DNA of 64,000 nt from Oculina patagonica. Its lineage: Eukaryota. Below are positions 20,331-34,837 of the stretch, piece by piece (the first letter of the stretch is position 1; each line of letters opens with the position of its first letter). The position numbers and the translations under genes are program-made. The notes beneath the pieces were generated by a model. That model was not told where the DNA came from, made no database searches, and saw only the letters and a list, made by a program, of their open reading frames with translations. The DNA lies in assembly GCF_052425735.1 (NCBI RefSeq), contig NC_135761.1, positions 38,812,001 through 38,876,000 of the forward strand. Direction: 5' to 3'.

Positions 20331-22310
20331 AGTTTTATTTCTATTTTTTCATGGTTAAAATTTTTTTTTATCTACTCCCCTACAATGTGTAACAAGTACC
20401 ATTTCTGATTCCAGCTTGTATAATTTTCAAAGAACAAAACTTGTAAAGTAAACCGAATTATTTTTGCTTTTACTCAACAGTTGAATAGCATGAGTCTCTA
20501 CAATTCTAAATTTCAAATGCATTTGTATCAGTCAAAACGAACTTTTTTCTAGATGTGTCCATTTTAACCCGAACTTGAAAAGTTCCCAATGTACTTGTAC
20601 TGACTTCATGAAGCCACTCCATTTTCAGTACACATTACGAGTCTTGTTTCTCGCTATTTGCTGAGATCCTTCAGAGTATGCATTTCCATAGAAATAAATA
20701 AAGAATAATAATAAACTAAAACATTTTTAACCTTTCTCTCCCTAACCCAATTTTTATTTTTTTTTTTCCCCCTCTTCTTTTACCACCTAAAGATAAATAA
20801 AAAATTTTTGCTCCGGAACAACTTCAGAACTTCACAACAATCAGCCATTAATAGAAAGCGAAGGCTCACAACTGGAAAAGAGGGCAATTCAGGAAAGAAA
20901 GCTTGTAACAACATTTTAAACTATTTTTCAGCCAACGTTGATTTGTATTTGTTGCTCACTGAAAGCAGTCATGTTAAATAAAATTAATTGATACTTGTGT
21001 AAACCTTAGGCAAAGGGACGTTAAACTCTTCAAACAGTGCATTGCAATGTAGTTGTCATTTATTTAAAACAATCTTTCCCCTTGTATGTAATTTCAACTC
21101 GTACTGCATAGGACAGTTTCACATAAAGGTAGCAAAGTTCTTTGGTAGGTGCAGAGAAAATTTGAGTCCAGCCCTTTTCTTCAGAGAATACACCATATTT
21201 TCTTTTTGAAATTTGAAATCAGATTATCTCAAAATGGCCGTCCACTGTCCATATCTGTGTTCTTTTTTGGTGAAAAGTGTACGTCAAGAAATGGAGGAGG
21301 AATTTAATAATTCGGATATTAGTTAAAATATTGAGAAAGAGATACGAGGTGTCAACCTTAAACAGTCAAGGTTTTTTTATTATTTACAGTAGGTGGAGCA
21401 AAAATGATATCTCTGTGTGAATATCAAATGATATCTTTAGATGTGAAGATAACAAATTTTTGCACAAAAGCTTACCTCACATTTCAATGTTATTGATATA
21501 AACAGATGAGTTATCAAATTTTCATTTGCAGATAATAGAAGACGAAAAAACAGCAGGCAAAACAGCAGTAGGGGTGAGTGTCTAATTAAACAGGCAGCCA
21601 GTGTTTCGCCAGATGTTGGTCTTTTCGCGTTGATTGCAAAATTTGGTATGGCATTAACTACAGAAGTAGTTAATGTTGCATCGTTGCTTTTACTGCTGCC
21701 ATTGGAGGTCGCTTTGTAGGTCTTGCTTGCGGCCAAGAAGTTGATACCATTTTCCAGTGCCTCGAAAGACTCTCAGCTGCCTTTCTGTTCGATCTGGGCA
21801 GTGAGTTCTACATGTTCACACCTCCGTGTGGCACATGCCCTTTAGGTAAAAAATGATCTAACAATCCTGTGATGTACTTTTTTCATCTTTGTGGCCACAG
21901 CAGAGGAGTTAGATTGAGTTCAAAATGCAACAGGTGTGGCATTTTATATGGATACAGCAAATATGGCAACTTGGGTTCAGGTTGGAAACTTTACCCAATG
22001 CTGAGAGATGCTGTAGAAGCAAGGGATGTTTGCTTTGTCCAACGATCTCTCCTGAGGTGGCAGATTTCTTTGGCATGAGTATTATTTAAAATGTTGTTGT
22101 TGTTTTTTCTCGATATAATTTTTATTCGTGAGAGTATGTTCATGACTGTCTTCTCATTATTTTTTATATTCTTCTCTAGGTGTCATTGTTGGGTTTCCTT
22201 TAGTGGGTTCTCAGTTTGTAGACTTGGCAAGGACTCGTAAAGTAAAGAGCAACCCTGTCAGTCTTAGAGCAGATTTTTGGAGTTGAATGCAAGTATCAAG
22301 TGTTGTTTGC

Positions 22311-22755
22311 TACTAATCAAAACTATAACAAAATTCTCGATCGGTGATTGGTTATCAGCAGCCCGATTTGAGCACTAATAGGACAGTGTACGCGTCATGC
22401 TTGTAATTGGACAGTGTAATAGGACAGTTTACGCGTCATGCCTGTGTAATTGGACAGTACGCGTCATTTTGCGTGCGCTGTTGTTGTGCATTTTGTTGAG
22501 TAAACTGTTATGTTTTTCAATATTTTTAAAGGCGTTACCATTTAACCATTTAACCGAAGATAAGTTTAATGTGTTTCTCAAATTTTGTCATAGTTTTGAT
22601 TAATTGGTAACTGAACTTTGTGTCATCCAATTCTGTCTGTAATCGTACTCGTGATTAAACAAGTCGGACTCCTGCTTCGCGGTCGTCCGATTTTGTTAAT
22701 CACTCATATGATTACATACGAATTGGACTCCACTCAGTCCTATTACCATTATTAA
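22311..22755 (+). mobile_element. Non-autonomous hairpin-ended element with the same architecture as the Crypton-like element at 30133-32184
   Basis: Left 22-bp IR (22314-22335) pairs 21/22 with subterminal 22581-22602. TGATTGGTT motif at ~22345. A ~150-nt terminal hairpin 22603-22750 has a TTC loop at 22676-22678 and TC/TC internal loops. Ends are TACTAA and TATTAA. Confidence 0.8.
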
Positions 22756-24879
22756 CAACAAGGTTTACTAACTGCTAAAAAACAAGTGCCTTGAGCCTGA
22801 ATGTGAATTTTCTGAAACCCATGAGCTACCAAATGAGCGTAAAGAGGATGATCCCAGACTACCGCCAAGTTATGTTGCTGATGCTTCATGTGAAGAGCAC
22901 CTGAGATTACATCTATGTTGCCTGTGATTACACCAGCTGAACAGTGTAAATCGTCCAATGAAATAGGCCTCAGATCAAAATTTTACAACATCCTGGCTGG
23001 AGAAATTTGTAGCTAGATTTACAAATAACTAAGGCCCAGTTCATAGATCTCAGATCCCAAGTTGCAGCTTTAAAGCTTTGTTAATTTAGTTTCAAACAAT
23101 GAAATGAAAGCACCAAATGTTATACTCATGGTTTCCCAAGTTACAATATCTTGTAACATTTTAAATGTACGAGCTTTGATTGGACAACATGATGTATTTA
23201 GACCAATCCCGTGCAAGAAAAATATTAGCCGTGGATAGATTACAGATACCAAAACTTTGTAGTCATAATCCCGCCAAGAAAATTAATATTTATAACAAAT
23301 TTAAAAAGTCTATTGCTATTACAATCACAAGCTGCGCTTATGACACTCATTATTAAACAATAACACTTTATTCATCCAATGGAATTAGTGGAATTTGGAT
23401 ACGTGTGATTTGAAGTGCCACATATAAAAGAAACTACAGCAAAAATTTTCACAATTTTCAGACAACTGTGCAAAAACAAACAAATCTTTTTCCAAAGCAC
23501 TATGTTCCCGAAAGAAAAAAGAACTGGTATCGCGCCAACTCTTTTGCTAATTGGAAAGGAGCTCATTTTCAACAAGAAACAACTTGTCCATGTCAACTGG
23601 GAAGGAAAAATAGTTCTAGCAGAGATCCTTGCCTTACTAGAAAGTTTTAATCGTGTGTTTTAAATGATGTTTAGAGTCAGTGTTATTTTCTTATGCACAA
23701 CTGTAGAAAGTTACATTTATTACGATTTCTTTTTATCCCTCACAAGTTTTGTACATGATAAACAAGCACTGTCCCAAAAAGACCTGGCGTGCGTTTCTCA
23801 AAGTCCCTTAAACTTCTTGGACTCGAAACTTTTCGGTGCTGTTTTTGGGCACGTTTTTTGGGTTGGAAAAGCATTTCTCAAAGGATCCAAAAGTGTCCAG
23901 TATTTTTCGGGTCGGTCTTGCTGTGGTCACATGCTCTAGAACATTGAAGCTCAATGTTCGCAAGCAATAATGCTGTAGTTATTTAAGGTTGTTCTAGCAC
24001 AGTTTACTGAAGAGATGAATGAAGCCCTGATCCAATAATATCAAAAATACCAAGTATGTGCAGGTCCTTAAACAGCCATTCTGAATGCTCAGGCTTATAA
24101 CAACTTGATTATTTCCCTCTGTCCATAAAGAGTAAGGAGCCAACAATGTGCCAAGGCCAGAGATAAATGCGAAATCAGCAATAATTTTATTTTCTTTCAA
24201 CAAATTTGGCATTTTTTGGCAAAATTTACAATGAAAAATTCTTTATTAAAAGACTACTGTGATAATTATCTATAGGTCAAAACTATTTACAATAAACGGT
24301 TCTATGATACAGTCATTAAAATATATAGAAAATGAATAAAAGCTGAGAAGCGTTTAAAATTGGAACAAGAATCTAACACAAATAAACCAGCCAAATTTCC
24401 ATAATCTAAACTTCTTTTGTTTGATCCACGATCCACGAACTTCAAAATTAGGCAGAGTCCAGAATCCGAGCTAAGAATGAATCCTGGTAATTTTCCACGG
24501 AAGCCCAAAATCCATGTGATATTAGAAACCTTATCCGACTATCTCTGAACCTGTTCAACACCACCGTAATTAACAATGCAGGCATCTTCTTTCTAATCTA
24601 ATCATTGATAGGTTGCGTTTTTTTGTTACTCTTTCAGCATGGGAAGACACGAGAGTATTGTCATACAAGTGTTTGAACCCATTTACGGATTTAAGGTAGA
24701 TATGTATGTGCGTTGTTTCCTTTCAACTTGTTTCTTCCATACTAAAAATACATCATAAGTGCAAATCCAAGTTAATAAAAAATAAAAATTAGCTTTAAAA
24801 TGCCTTCCAAAACAAATGAGTCTTTTATAGATACTTTTAAGCATGCTTAAATATTTAAATTTATTTGCACTACATTCCA

Positions 24880-28369: not shown

Positions 28370-30164
28370 TACTGCCAATGACCCAGTGACAAGTGAATAA
28401 ATGGAAACTCTGTTCTCAGTGGCCTCAACATTAAGAGGCTGTGAGTTGACATAGCCCATTACCTGGAACATAATTTGTTGTTAATTATTAGGCGTGGACA
28501 TAATGAATTAGTGTTCTTGTAGCTTTTTGCAATCTTGTCCCCAGAGTCCATAACTAAATGATTCTTGGTTCTGAAGAATAACATTGTTGCCTCTGGGGAC
28601 AAGGAAAGAGCATTATATATAAAATGAACAAGTTTCACCCTAATAGGTGCAACAAATATTTATTATTTATTATTTAATATTTAGTTAAAATACTGTACAA
28701 ATAATAATTTACTAAATTAAATGGATTGGTGTCATATCGTCTGGGTGAGTGAAAAGGGACAAAAATTGACATTGACATTGTAATGAACACTGTATTGTCT
28801 TATCAATTCCATTGGAATAATGTAAATGTCGCACGTGCAGACAAAATAATCAAGCCAACATGTACTGTATAATACAATTTGTAAAAATTTATCAATGACA
28901 TTTTTGTCAGGAGCAGGACACATGATAACAGTACTTGGCAAGAAAAATAATTTAACAGCCACAACTTGGACTGTAAACTGTATAACAGTGTGACCTTGAC
29001 TGTCATTTTACTTCAAAGAATAAGTTCATTTCAGTTGTTTAGTTATTATGACTGATTACTCTCTATGTGGCATCAATTAATATATAGATTTAGGCAAGCC
29101 TAAAAGCGGAGCTCCCAGTTATTTCCCCTTAATAATTTTTTAGACTGTTTTTTATTCATGTTATTTTCTTTATATGCGATACGTATCCCTTTTCACCATG
29201 AACAACAGCACCAAATAAGAGTTAAAAAATCGATCAATCAAAAATATCATTAGTAGTCTATGCATAACCTTGGTTCTAAAGATACACTCGCAACTCTCAA
29301 AGTTAAACAAGAACAAAGAAAGGGTTGCTCTAGAACATATCCATACCCCCATCATAACTGGTATGTTACAGCTGTACATAACACAACTGGAACGTTTTGC
29401 ATGTAGCTTCCCCCTCCCCCAAATGGGGGCCCTATACGATGGAATGGTGACAATGACAGTCTTATTATTGCCTAAGGGACCGGTCATTATTTATGTAGAG
29501 GGGGGGAGGGGGAGGGAAAAAATATGTTGGAAAGATCAAAATTTCGGTAAGGCCCCCCCTCCAGGCCATGTAAGTAGCAAGTGACCCCTGCTTCTTTATT
29601 ATATTTACGTGATGACCCCCCCCCCTTCACCTCATATCTCCCTTTATATGCCTTAAGTAATTATTAAATGCATGTTACATACAATCTTAATTGCACACTT
29701 GTTCTGGATACTCTTTCAGCAATAGGGCAAATTTTGGATGAGTTATGTGTATAGCAAAAATACCTCAATTATTAACTCCTTAACTTTGGAAGTGATAGTT
29801 TTTACAAATTATGCTCTCATGGTGAACACAAATGTAATACCGGTAACCATGCAAAATATAATTCTTTTCCAATGATTTTCCTTAAGTGTAAAAGAACTAC
29901 TTTCTTGTTGTTATATCATGTGTTATTACTTCTTGGGCTATTGCAGTGATAATCATTTTGTAAAAAGAAATAATTGCAGTCAAACCAGATATTAAAGCAG
30001 ATAGGTCTGGATTCTTTATTTAACTAAAACTTGAGATAACAATGGAGTTTAGAGTGCAAACAGTATTTCTGTAAAATACAAATCACTAAAGTTGTACATA
30101 ATAGTGGAGTTTAAACAAAAGAAAACAATAGAAATTAGAAAATAGTCCAAAGGAAATACGTGCG

Positions 30165-30173
30165 CTGATTGGT
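30165..30173 (-). promoter_or_regulatory. CCAAT-box-like motif (TGATTGGTT) ~100 bp upstream of the YR start codon
   Basis: The same motif lies at the same ~30-bp offset from the left end in the non-autonomous element (~22345). Confidence 0.4.
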
Positions 30174-30272
30174 TAATAATCGTATCTCCATAACTCGATA
30201 GAAACACAGAAAAGTTGTTGTCGTCAGAGCAGTTAGTCACGGCATTACCGTGAAAGCCAGACGAGGATAAAA

Positions 30273-31702
30273 ATGTTAAATGCCAATGCCAGAGGCGACG
30301 ACGAACCGGTTAAGAAAAAACAAAGATTTGCAAGCTTAGAAGCAAACGAGTTGGACGTTTTATTAGACTCAGCACAGTCTCAAAGTACAAAGTATAACAC
30401 ATCGTTTGCAGTTTCTGTTTACAAAGGTAAGCAACGAAAAAATGTTTATTACAATAAAAAGCTCGGTTTGAAGTCAACAATTTTCAATTAAATTCTATTA
30501 AATTAACTGAAAATAACAAACGTTACTTGTTTTTAGAATGGGCCCAGCACAAAAATGTTGAAAAACCACTACACGAACAAACTGACGAGGAACTCGACAA
30601 CAACTTGAGAGCCTTTTATGCCGAGGCAAGAAACAAGGAAGGCAATGAATACGGAAAATCTACCCTATTGTGTTTGAGAAGCGGAATTGAACGATATCTT
30701 AACTTCCCCCCTTACAACCGAGGTGTAAGGTTTTCCCAAAATCCTGTCTTCAAAAATTCAAACATGATGCTGAACGCCAAAATCAAAGATTTGAAACAAC
30801 AGGGCAAGCAAAACATTGAACACAAACCTGACATTTCCGTACAAGACCTTCAGAAGCTAAAATGTCATCAAGCATTGTCTCCTTCGACTCCTCTCGGCTT
30901 GTTAAGAAATGTTTGGTTTAATACAACGCTGTACTGGTGCCGTAGGGGCCGTGAAGGTCAAAGAAATTTGACCTCCTCGAGTTTTAAGTTCCTCCGAGAC
31001 GAAAACAACCGTCCATACGCCACAATGACACACGATGAGTCGACGAAGAACCACCCAGGCGGCGTTGGTGACATAGAAAGCTTCGAAAAAGAAGGAAGGC
31101 TGTACAAAACAACAGATGATCCCAGCGACGGTTTCAATGCGCTGCAGTTCTACATCTCAAAGCTGAATCCAGAATGTACAGCCTTCTTCCAGTACCCGAA
31201 ACGAAAGTGGTCTCCTTCCGACCCCATCTGGTACGAAAATCGCCCGCTCGGCATTCACAAGTTGGGCACGATGATGAAAGAGATAAGCGAAGTGGCCGGC
31301 CTTTCGATGAAGTATACAAATCATTCAGTGAGGGCAACGGCAATTACCATCTGGTTCAATGCTGGCCTATCCAATCGTCACATAATGGCTATATCCGGCC
31401 ACCGAAATGAGCAGTCATTTAGGAGCTACAACGCACGTCCTTCGTCTGCACAACTCCAACAGAGCAGCGATGTGTTATCGACAGCACTTGGCGCGACTTC
31501 ACAACCTTCAACAGCGCTTCAGATCCAACCACAAGCTCCACAACAGGCCCAGCTATTCTCCCAGATGAGTGCCCAGTCAAATTCGTTCAACAGAAATGCC
31601 ACCTTCACCAACATGTTCTCGGGTTGCTCGATCGGCAGCGTTCAAGTGGTGGTCAAACCATGCGGCGGAATAGATGAGCCGAACGCAAACTACAATCCCT
31701 GA
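30273..31702 (+). CDS. Crypton-type tyrosine recombinase (DUF3504-like; KCTD1/ZMYM/QRICH1-related domain); exons 30273-30426 and 30537-31702, 439 aa
   Basis: GT-AG intron 30427-30536 joins the two ORFs in frame (VYK-E-WAQ). Catalytic residues present: R (CRRGREGQR), K (STKNHPGG), HxxR (TNHSVRAT), H (SGHRN), Y (FRSY). No internal stops. Confidence 0.92.
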
Positions 31703-32011
31703 CTTCTACCAGTTTAAGCATCGGCTTAGTTATTTTGCATTATTTTGTCAAGTTTAAGGCCAAATTTCTTTGATTCCATGACAGAAAACGCTGACTTTTA
31801 GCGTTCTTGCCTACACGTCGAACAGCCTCGAAGAATTGATTTATTTCAGTCGATTGATTCCTTTAGCATGATTGGTTGAGCTTGTTTATGACGTGGTTTT
31901 TGCGAGGTGTAGAGAATCTACGTTTTGAAGACAAATAAAATGGCAATTTTACTTGCGTTCTTCGTTATTTCCTTTGGGCTATTTTCTAAAAGAGATAGAA
32001 AACATTTTTTC

Positions 32012-32045
<34 letters not shown>

Positions 32046-34837
32046 AGTTTGGGAGAACTCGAAAAAGCTGTGGAAACACTCGCCTTCGGCTCGTGTTCCC
32101 AGAGCATTTCTCGTTCTCCCAAACTTCCACTCGTGTTTCTATAACTCGATAGAAACACGGAAAATGTTTTCTATTTCTTAATTATAGCATAAAATTGTAC
32201 AATTTAGCGTCACTGTTTGACTTATAGTGTTTGCACTCTTCTATTTAACTGTTTTACCCAACTCAAACTGCTGATCCCCCTAAATCTTTATAAAATATTT
32301 TAGCCCCCCCCCTCTTGCCACTCTGAAATAGCCTTGACCCCCCCCCCCCTCTACATAAATAATGACTGGTCCCTAACACCAAAAATAACAGCTTCCTGCT
32401 AGCAAACTCAGTAAAAGGTAGTGGCAAGCAAAATATTGACATTCCAGATGTCATTCTGCCAAATAGGGTCCCCAAAACGATAACACCTTTTTCCTTTACG
32501 AGTCCCTTTGCCCTTAGCTTTATTACATGTAAACTTAGCAAAAATTCTGGAGAGGCATAAATACTGTTTGTTACATGTAGTTCTAAACTCAGGTATAGTT
32601 TGCTTGGCAAAAATTTTACCATGCCATTTTACCATTTTACCAGGCATTAAGAGATTGATGAAATGTGTATCTCATTATCATAATTATTGTTCTTTGCAGT
32701 GTGGGCACTGGGAATTAAATGTTTAGGTAGCATGATGATTTTTTTATGTACATGATTGTACCTTATCTGGCTTTATTTCATCAACTTTAAAATTACACCT
32801 GTCCTTATAAATAAATTGTATTCTACAGACAGTACATTTGTACATGCAATGAAGAATAAAATATAATAATCTGATTGTTCATTTATCTCTTTCTGTGTCT
32901 GCAACTCTGTGGAAATTCTGCTACCCGTGTTAACCCTGAAAAAGGCAAAAAAGACATAAGATTTGTTGATGATCATTGGCATCAAATGAATGTTTATAAT
33001 TTTAAATTAGCTTAAATTGTTCAGAACACTCTGCAGATGCATAAAAAAGAGATATATTTTTCCAATTTTTGCCTGGGCCAGGGACTGTGTTGGGGGATAT
33101 GTTCAGAAACAAAAAAATCCTTTGACCTACTGAAGGCATAAATAGTGCTATCAAAAAGACCTGGCATATAACTAAGCTTTGGTGGGTGTTTTCCTATGTT
33201 TTCCCTATTAAATGAGGTGTCTTAAGACTCTTACATGTATATTGCTCTCTGACAGGTGCTGTTGAAAGCACTGTGATTAATTCCACGAAAGCTTACATAT
33301 TCTCCCCTTTCTTAGTGATGTAGCTAAGAAAACACTACGCTGGCTCATCAACAAGCCTAACTGTGAAATTTCAGCTGAGTTAAAATTCTATTTCTTTATT
33401 CGCCTAGTACCACAACAAGACAATTTATGTTAGGTTAGGGCTTAAGCTTACATGTAGATATTAAGATTAGCTGTTAACAAGCGGAATTTGAACAGGTCAA
33501 TTTGCACTTCTCCCACAAAATAATTACAAGTATTTCAGTAATTTGTCGGGTCAGGTAGCAGATCTTGTTGGGTTTTTTTGCCCTCCTACCCCTCCCCCCA
33601 TCCCCTCTTTTCTTGAACAATGAAAACATTACATTTTGTATGTATATTTACATGTGCAGTTACATGTAAATTGTGTATATTAAATTCCAAAAAAGGAACC
33701 ATGATTTTAAGGAAACATAAACTTACCAAGCAGTTAAAACACTTATCATTTTTCAAACCCCAAAATTTTACACTTAAAAAACAAGTTTCATGCTCTAATG
33801 TAGATTCACATAAACTAAACTCTGTCATAGAGCATTTAGAGAAACAAAGGTATAAACTGACACTAATGTTATACTTACCTTCATCATCACAGACATTAAC
33901 TGCACCCCTTGAATTCCTGTTTTCCCTCACTAAAAACAAAATGTACACAATATCAAAAACCCATAAAAGGTATGGAAATCCTAATATAGCAAGTTTTAAA
34001 AATGAAACAGATTTGCTTATATGAAATTAATGATAAACTCAAACTGCCTCTTACAACCTCCATAAATACCGGTCACTCAATTAACCTCGCAAACCTTGAT
34101 GTACATTTGAATGTAAATGTATTTTAAATTTGCTTTAAATGATATTTTCCTCATTGCAGACAGGCACATTTTAAACTTTTTTTTTATTTCAGGATCGAAA
34201 ACTAACCTGCTACTCTTGTAGAAAAAATAATTCAGGCAAAAATATCTGATTAGTCACTGCTTTAGGCTGGAAAACTTTGAAAGGATTAAAAAATTGTACC
34301 AGTCACAACCATCAAGATAGCAATGCTAATAGCCACAATTCCCCTCTGGTTGTCCGGGGCAAGTAGATTTTCCTGTCAAGCAATTAATTTTTCATGCCTG
34401 CTTGCATAATGGGTAAAGGCCCAGGCATATCATGATCATCTGACTACAAGTTAATTATACAGTCACAAGTTTGCTAATACATAGTGTCACATGCACTGTC
34501 CTAGGCCAACAAAATTTGAGAGCTGCTTGTTGACCACAGGGCAAACTCGATTTTTTTTCCAAGTCCTTATCCTATATTATAACTGATCAATTTGGTTGTT
34601 ATAACATAAAAAAGTTCATGATCTTACACATAACATATTAGTGCTTTTTTCTCTATTGTAATTTACAAGAATCCAGGCGTAGTCAATCGATAGAAGTTGA
34701 TATCTCAAATCTGTCGATACAATCGATATCTATTGATATGAATCACAAATTGATAATCGGTAATCGATAACAATAGAACTCACAGAAAAAAATATTATCA
34801 ATTGTTATTAATTGAGAAAATCGATGAAAATCGATAC

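Follow-up and report, generated by a model that had tools for sequence, protein, structure and literature searches.

The 443-base element at positions 22314-22756 of the window (the whole 64,000-nt stretch of Oculina patagonica DNA analyzed here) can with good confidence be regarded as an old, fixed, gene-less (MITE-like) derivative of hairpin-ended Cryptons, elements that encode a DUF3504-type tyrosine recombinase. The ~437-bp non-coding repeat family to which it belongs is labeled MITE-A. A recombinase supplied in trans would bind the AATWGGACAG motifs and the hairpin base and would excise MITE-A as a circle; the circle would then insert through an exchange at one point, directly 5' of TAAT. 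The source is most likely a Crypton of the clade that shares the right end ATTAC-N5-6-TAAT (element M, Crypton C). More speculatively, the bottom strand may fold as single-stranded DNA with one strand being exchanged, by analogy with integron attC. An earlier reading had been made from the letters of the window (the sequence-only reading); added here are the split palindrome, the empty sites, the one-sided flanks, the target motif, the covariation test, and the gene-bearing relatives of the clade. No paper was found that describes a hairpin-ended class of Cryptons.

Table 1 Features of the MITE-A copy and of the comparator Crypton in the window. Positions are those of the window; +, top strand; -, bottom strand.
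Feature	Positions	Strand	Basis or remark
MITE-A copy, 443 bases	22314-22756	+	Boundaries from alignment of 30 genomic copies
Left TAAT, element-type copy of the putative 4-base crossover sequence	22314-22317	+	TAAT in 28/29 genomic copies
Left-terminal 22-nt repeat TAATCAAAACTATAACAAAATT	22314-22335	+	Complementary 21/22 to 22581-22602
TGATTGGTT, inverted CCAAT box	22346-22354	+	32 nt from left end
Four direct copies TAATAGGACAG/TAATTGGACAG	22376-22457 (at 22376, 22404, 22417, 22447)	+	Motif search
Subterminal inverted copy of left end	22581-22602	+	Immediately before hairpin
Terminal imperfect hairpin with strand-specific mismatches	22599-22756	+	DNA fold
Hairpin apex	22674-22680	-	Bottom strand GCGAAGC (GAA loop); top strand GCTTCGC
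Right 4-mer TAAC, target-derived	22753-22756	+	Right copy keeps target letters in empty/filled pairs
Comparator Crypton (window Crypton)	30133-32184	+	DUF3504 + Phage_integrase ORF; same end layout; AATTA flanks

MITE-A is a discrete, high-copy mobile unit, some copies of which are 99.8% identical to the consensus (437 bp, from 24 aligned copies). A genome-wide search for copies, which the sequence-only reading had proposed as a check, gave 841 first-look candidates in the same 529-Mb assembly. All 40 full-length matches that were scored have the same boundaries, at 91-95% identity to the window copy; these boundaries lie at most 3 nt from the span first claimed, 22311-22755 (~445 bp). The 30 genomic copies fetched are 94-99.8% identical to the consensus, and the window copy, at 95%, is a member of an older subfamily. 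The 23-nt left end occurs at least 418 times in the genome with up to two mismatches (control pattern, 0 and 1), and an exact-match scan of public contigs returned at least 120 coral-derived metagenome stretches with the exact left end. By direct reading the window copy opens with TAATCAAAACTATAACAAAATT and closes with ...CCATTAT TAAC. In short form, the end letters of MITE-A are TAATCAAAAC...

Contigs of four coral organisms from separate studies were compared over 21300-23800. The element has ~1000 times the depth of its unique flanks in these corals, contigs from other MITE-A copies break away at 22314 and at 22753/22755, and the right junction of the window insertion is bridged by a contig of a second organism that reaches 69 nt into the element. 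Depth and bridged junction together indicate that the family is abundant across related corals and that the window copy is old and fixed; among the joints listed for the four organisms, none was an empty allele of this insertion. Of the 14 substitutions between window copy and consensus, five change CpG to TpG/CpA (three in the hairpin), in keeping with the CpG decay suspected at first for several deviations. The window element holds no open reading frame of note. An origin as a SINE or from another RNA was dropped, there being no tRNA in 22000-23100 and no Rfam match to the element at E<=1.

The left end has the build that was first described for it. Its 22-bp inverted repeat does pair with a site ahead of the hairpin (Table 1), and repeat and site co-vary between MITE-A and its sister family B, where CAAAAC/GTTTTG becomes CGTATC/GATACG. 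TGATTGGTT, reported at ~30 bp inside the left end, is kept in the consensus and is probably a relic of the parent's promoter or of a recombinase site; MITE-A, family B, the window Crypton (30167), Crypton D, and nested sister elements all have TGATTGG ~30 nt in from the left end. All four left-end copies of the hairpin-arm motif TAATAGGACAG/TAATTGGACAG were located in the window copy. The family consensus likewise holds four AATWGGACAG motifs, and the octamer AATWGGAC recurs in the right hairpin arm in both orientations (consensus 402, +; 418, -). In the ~1 Mb of sequence examined, clusters of AATWGGAC are limited to MITE-A and its sister families, and the repeats are candidate binding sites of the recombinase.

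The same layout is found on elements that carry a gene. The window Crypton was said to be unrelated to MITE-A in sequence and alike in layout, and both statements stand: the end designs match, the best blastn match between the two is 19 nt long (E=0.05, not significant), and their tail-to-tail local alignment score is equaled by 80% of shuffles. At least 309 candidate DUF3504 loci are present in the genome. An imperfect palindrome of 100-190 nt was found at 26 of the 30 that were fetched, a few hundred bases downstream of the gene except in L031 and L032; on the gene-sense strand 19 of 21 distinct hairpins combine TC/TC loops with a C-TNC-G apex, and the two exceptions lie upstream of their gene. 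The layout occurs beside DUF3504 genes of several unrelated families. Crypton D is 1.88 kb long and is present in more than 12 copies that are 97.5-99.3% alike. Its 420-aa ORF has Pfam matches to DUF3504 (100 bits) and Phage_integrase; its left repeat has an inverted counterpart in subterminal position, TGATTGG occurs both ~31 nt in from the left end and ~100 nt ahead of the hairpin, and a repeated GAGTGCAA motif recurs in the hairpin. Crypton C (L064; 400-aa ORF, DUF3504 94 bits, Phage_integrase) and the window Crypton have the same build as Crypton D. The order in MITE-A, left repeat first, hairpin last, and TC/TC on top, is that of the gene-carrying Cryptons in gene-sense orientation, and MITE-A shows every feature of the hairpin-ended class (left repeat, subterminal copy, long hairpin, TC/TC loops, C-TNC-G). 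An apparent head-to-tail array of MITE and Crypton in L052/L064 was discarded: the MITE is inserted within Crypton C, at an internal TAAT 59 bp in, and the true left end of Crypton C lies further upstream of this insertion.

The nearest longer relatives of MITE-A are tyrosine-recombinase elements. Element M (840 bp; metagenome contig L083:395-1235) directly follows a MITE-A copy, has the same design, and carries AATTGGACAG-type motifs. Its last 39 nt match MITE-A in 32 positions (0 of 2000 shuffles score as high), whereas the right-terminal matches of Crypton C, Crypton D, and the window Crypton to MITE-A are not above chance. Element M keeps ~105 codons of the N-terminus of a Crypton recombinase (tblastn E-values against 27 recombinases of the genome are as low as 5e-11, and a 39-aa piece scores 28.6 bits with Pfam QRICH1), in a coding region that is broken by one frameshift and two stops. 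At two loci of the genome (C8:25293030-25295869 and C6:14297575-14300288) the left 635-662 nt of M and its tail stand 2.7-2.8 kb apart on the same strand; by coordinates, QRICH1-like and DUF3504 matches lie between these M-type ends. The matched stretch has an in-frame TAA, so full-length M-type copies may be inactive.

An autonomous element with MITE-A's own ends was not found among the 30 genomic copies and at least 120 metagenome loci. None of the 100 left ends listed lies within 10 kb, in register, of the 150 DUF3504 and 150 QRICH1 matches listed; a BLAST of the consensus against the 30 DUF3504 loci returned inserted copies only (L052, L056); and in the at least 120 coral metagenome contigs no recombinase ORF lies downstream of an A-type left end. 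The apparent longer relatives L140, L096, L082, L085/L093, L098, and L182 were rejected; they share the MITE part only and have no recombinase-like ORF. By coordinates, pairs of left ends at C1:33919286 and 33920977 (same strand, 1691 bp apart) and at C2:18665832 and 18666745 are candidates for longer elements. Rep-helicase or DDE ORFs were absent from every locus examined, and where the sequence-only reading had named autonomous relatives with such enzymes as the outcome that would overturn it, the longer relatives carry tyrosine-recombinase sequence instead. As far as sequence comparison goes, a link between MITE-A and the recombinase is supported by the shared architecture, the shared insertion signature, and the sister family represented by element M; the broader YR-mobilized family with MITE-like derivatives that had been postulated gains support from the same three.

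The insertion signature was read from empty and filled sites and from the flanks of many copies. Three empty/filled pairs, chance finds among the loci, place the insertions at TAAT-like sites. Empty L053 and filled L052 differ by the element plus one TAAT (TAAT to TAAT..TAAT); in the other two pairs MITE-A lies inside an element of sister family B, and comparison with the family-B reference gives TAAT to TAAT..TAAT for L014 and GAAT to TAAT..AAAT for L025. The left 4-mer of genomic copies is almost always TAAT (Table 1). The right 4-mer is TAAT in 14 of 30 copies and another in 16 (AAAT, TTAT, TAAC, ATAT, and similar). Among 38 non-redundant metagenome copies, 22 have TAAT as the right 4-mer and 16 have another; the first base, which is the sole unbiased left position in these copies, is T in 37 on the left and in 30 on the right. 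The copies are 94-99.8% identical to the consensus, so that flanking 4-mers which differ are not decayed duplications; the short repeats at the ends of MITE-A reflect target microhomology. A staggered exchange over a 4-bp overlap predicts target letters equally often on both sides. A 4-mer other than TAAT was found once on the left and 16 times on the right (two-sided binomial ~3e-4, our own estimate), which points to a single crossover point immediately 5' of TAAT. The Cryptons are flanked by TAAT..TAAT (Crypton C), TTAT (Crypton D), and AATTA (window Crypton); Crypton D is one-sided as well, its left 4-mer being TTAT in 13 of 15 copies and its right 4-mer varying (TTAT, GTAT, or TTAA).

The targets carry A-T-T at -10 to -8 from the TAAT-like site, with T at -9 in 24 of 29 genomic and 37 of 38 metagenome sites; this recalls ATTAC at -11 to -7 in MITE-A's own right end. 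An internal TAAT of MITE-A (consensus 62-65) has the target context and is occupied by insertions in five metagenome contigs. In at least three of the five, TGATTGG stands ~30 nt inside the inserted element, which identifies these elements as sister families of the same design.

Brought together in a circle or a tandem, the right and left ends form one imperfect palindrome of ~205 nt, in which the left repeat is the outer continuation of the right hairpin arm. TAAT lies 22 nt from its outer edge, with the inverted ATTA opposite. The integrated layout of left repeat, subterminal repeat, and hairpin is this palindrome opened at TAAT. Tandem MITE-A copies in L022 share one TAAT, and further tandem copies are present by coordinates; the tail and junction of the window Crypton, read by eye, behave alike. 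The shared TAAT and the completed palindrome are indirect evidence that MITE-A may leave as a circle and integrate by site-specific recombination.

The terminal hairpin was described correctly at the outset, with its GC-TTC-GC loop and GCGAAGC on the bottom strand (apex, Table 1). Folded as DNA, the hairpin of the window copy has an energy of -32.5 kcal/mol (z = -7.6; 0 of 200 shuffles as good), and it is ~160 nt long in the family consensus. On the top strand of the consensus the apex is C-TTC-G; counted in stem positions from it, TC/TC loops come after 4, 25, and 56 and TCA/CTC comes after 50. The bottom strand carries four GA/GA loops. The loops first placed at 5-6, 26-27, and 52-53 correspond to those after 4, 25, and 50/56 positions, and a consensus that lacked TC/TC loops, named beforehand as evidence against the reading, is not what was obtained. 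The spacing of 21 between the first two loops, said to be shared with the YR element at 30133-32184, is real for these two elements (loops after 3 and 24 in the window Crypton); as a universal rule it was rejected, since other families have spacings of 31, 56, or 23.

It is possible, as a tentative alternative to a duplex reaction, that a folded single strand moves in the manner of attC: the bottom strand would fold by means of tandem G/A pairs and the GCGAAGC cap, a duplex-like site would be rebuilt around TAAT/ATTA, one strand would be exchanged, and replication would resolve the product. Recognition would then be largely structural, and families unrelated in sequence could be cross-mobilized. 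This reading is favored by a mismatch code that is strand-specific and conserved across families, by the one-sided flanks (1 left against 16 right, and alike in Crypton D), by the subterminal ATTA that pairs with the junction TAAT in the extended palindrome, and by the failure to find a cognate master despite copies that match the consensus at up to 99.8%; the apex, moreover, is a known mini-hairpin, GCGAAGC having been described as an extraordinarily stable one in DNA (PMC13037366). Against it, each family has its own motif in left end and hairpin arm (AATWGGACAG in MITE-A; GAGTGCAA in Crypton D), which suggests sequence-specific binding by a family-specific enzyme, and the asymmetry of the flanks also fits a duplex reaction with TAAT in a binding arm rather than in the overlap. 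The computed difference between the strands is small: with the DNA parameters of ViennaRNA, which may miss sheared G/A pairs and the stability of mini-hairpins, the bottom strand of the consensus, at -52.6 kcal/mol, is favored over the top strand, at -50.1, by ~2.5 kcal/mol. Extended to all animal Cryptons of the hairpin class, the proposal is that they recombine the folded bottom strand of the ~205-nt palindrome (G/A pairs, GNA cap), with the DUF3504 recombinase exchanging one strand 5' of TAAT and replication completing the process; in this general form it seems rather doubtful.

Conservation of the hairpin was examined in 14 aligned tails (mean column identity 75%), which represent families A, A2, B, and a fourth, all diverged from one another. 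In a consensus fold on this alignment 86.9% of cells pair, and double changes occur in 18 of 64 pairs. The covariation score is 0.187; shuffled alignments give 0.095, none of 500 attaining the observed score, and sliding the partners yields no more than 0.078. Covariation inside a palindrome can also come from arm-to-arm copying of duplex DNA. At the three TC/TC loops 39 of 42 cases are pyrimidine/pyrimidine and none is Watson-Crick, and in the four sister families the stems beside these conserved loops change in compensatory fashion. Of the 14 relatives, 12 have TTC, TGC, or TAC as the top-strand apex loop, which is GNA on the bottom strand. Both the pairing of the hairpin and its mismatches are therefore maintained. 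To that extent the selection on the fold claimed by the sequence-only reading is upheld; the folding of single-stranded DNA goes beyond maintained pairing and maintained mismatches.

That palindrome and mismatches have no role in transposition, and are kept by template switching between the arms and by descent from a single source, is improbable. Copies within a family do inherit the consensus passively, and palindromes can homogenize their arms (cf. PMC13100816). Homogenization of the arms would, however, erase the mismatches, yet the TC/TC loops have kept their positions in four families that differ by ~25% in their stems, and loops of the same type occur in unrelated Crypton families, always on the gene-sense strand.

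It is very improbable that MITE-A is a non-autonomous element of the Helitron/Helentron type, or of another HUH rolling-circle type, with the hairpin as its 3' signal. The asymmetric ends and 3' hairpin, the AT-rich insertion beside a fixed tetranucleotide with no true duplication, and the TC directly after 'TAA' would suit such an element, but the features that define Helitrons and Helentrons are not those of MITE-A: the ends read TAATC...CCATTAT plus the 4-mer, with no CTRR 3' end; a 4-base repeat is present at both ends; the hairpin is ~160 nt long, against 16-20 nt in Helitrons; and a Rep/helicase ORF was found in none of the examined loci, whereas the gene-carrying elements with this layout all encode a single DUF3504/Phage_integrase ORF and sister element M keeps a recombinase remnant. 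Scarcely credible is an ordinary cut-and-paste DDE MITE that duplicates 4 bp of its target, of the kind represented by the piggyBac-related CMITEs of Acropora. Small size, abundance, AT targets, and a 4-base repeat in the flanks would agree with such a MITE, and coral MITEs with TTAA duplications have been published (PMC2872659). MITE-A has, however, neither terminal inverted repeats nor a perfect duplication: its right terminus does not repeat the left end, whose inverted copy stands 155 nt further in; the flanking 4-mers differ in 16 of 30 copies; and CMITEs are ~100 bp long, with CCCTTT repeats and TTAA.

No other class of eukaryotic DNA transposons is as poorly understood as the Cryptons, whose ends have been described as featureless and from which the vertebrate genes ZMYM2-4, QRICH1, and KCTD1 arose. 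To our knowledge, no Crypton transposition intermediate has been shown so far. The many young families in a coral genome supply exact ends, a junction palindrome, the target ATT-N6-TAAT, a mismatch code, and one-sided flanks, and these make Crypton movement experimentally addressable. For annotation, their copies number hundreds to thousands, and standard tools would either label these as generic MITEs or fail to classify them. If true, the folded-strand reading would be a eukaryotic counterpart of integron attC recombination, and a shared structural code would let the recombinases of sequence-unrelated elements move gene-less families such as MITE-A.

Among known systems, Cryptons of the CryptonA group (Goodwin 2003; Kojima & Jurka 2011, PMC3212892) have, like the gene-carrying relatives of MITE-A, a single DUF3504/Phage_integrase ORF; as here, their 4-5-base direct repeats represent target microhomology with no duplication, and their non-autonomous derivatives far outnumber the autonomous copies. 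Inverted repeats at both termini are absent from MITE-A, as from Cryptons, the inverted copy lying inside the right end. The Crypton descriptions consulted give animal Cryptons no terminal repeats, direct or inverted, and the words hairpin and palindrome are absent from them. Unlike the published Cryptons, the elements described here have a left repeat, an internal inverted copy, and a coded hairpin of ~160 nt, that is, a split palindrome; MITE-A itself, unlike Cryptons proper, is gene-less and its cognate master was not found. The CMITEs of Acropora (PMC2872659) are, like MITE-A, abundant coral MITEs able to form tandem arrays; they are piggyBac-derived, their CCCTTT repeats are terminal and inverted, and they have no relation to MITE-A in sequence or structure.

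The closest functional analogs appear to be IS200/IS605 elements and integron attC sites, with membership of either not being claimed. IS200/IS605 elements (IS608) share with MITE-A subterminal imperfect hairpins, strand-asymmetric ends, and insertion beside a specific tetranucleotide with no duplication; they have an HUH Y1 transposase and small hairpins at both ends, whereas here a tyrosine recombinase is the only associated enzyme and the hairpin is single and long. The attC sites recombined by IntI are, like MITE-A, imperfect palindromes of variable sequence in which conserved unpaired bases mark one strand; both have one fixed recombination point, with the bases on one side coming from the partner, and the head-to-tail arrays of attC may be compared with the tandem MITE-A copies in L022. 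In contrast to attC, the host here is eukaryotic, the recombinase is of the DUF3504 type, the palindrome is much longer, and the mismatches are tandem G/A pairs where attC has extrahelical bases.

The internal TAAT of MITE-A, the gene-less, hairpin-ended repeat family of ~437 bp, is an insertion hot spot, in agreement with the target motif. This site (consensus 62–65) has ATT at −10 to −8, and five coral metagenome contigs (L075, L079, L149, L179, L181) carry an insertion there. At least three of the inserts start immediately 3′ of the TAAT and carry TGATTGG ~30 nt inside, and are therefore assigned to sister families. Most metagenome copies (L065–L184) are ~41 bp shorter than the genomic MITE-A consensus and contain two AATWGGACAG motif units, as against four in the consensus; this shorter form is a species- or subfamily-level length variant.

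Sister family B is as abundant as MITE-A in the window's own assembly (890 first-look candidates) and, judged by coordinates, forms both head-to-tail and head-to-head pairs. In gene-carrying Cryptons, a second TGATTGG precedes the subterminal repeat by ~100 nt, in addition to the copy near the left end, whereas MITE-A has retained the left one only.

The recombinase remnant of M, the 840-bp sister element, has an in-frame TAA opposite a glutamine codon of other families, and one TAA is present in the same domain match of each of its two full-length genomic relatives. The stops agree at the level of the domain, and the M-type family may owe its spread to a gene copy that was defective from the start. 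One region of contig C4 is unusually rich in Crypton copies, at least seven DUF3504 and several QRICH1-like matches being clustered within ~190 kb.

Coordinates of the elements, motifs and regions discussed (G000, the assembly of the window; L, individual genomic loci or metagenome contigs).
Feature	Location	Remark
Sister family B	L061:4789-5250	~450 bp; 72–79% identity to MITE-A
Family B pair examples	C1:14659259-14660172; C12:33377320-33378102	by coordinates
TGATTGG pair, window Crypton	30167 and 31870	
TGATTGG pair, L035	969 and 2529	
M recombinase remnant	L083:865-1041	in-frame TAA
M full-length relatives, domain match	G000:C8:25293530-25293739; G000:C6:14299597-14299806	one TAA each
Crypton-dense region	G000:C4:47.53-47.72 Mb	
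Tandem Crypton pair (L054, L055)	G000:C6:31025331-31027773	one family

The apical part of the hairpin is inverted between the two members of a tandem Crypton pair (L054 and L055): in one copy the three loops are TC/TC and the apex reads CTCCG, in the other the three loops are GA/GA and the apex reads CGGAG. The same kind of difference separates Crypton loci L053 and L052. In both cases the hairpin tip appears to have undergone a flip/flop of the kind known from parvovirus terminal repeats.
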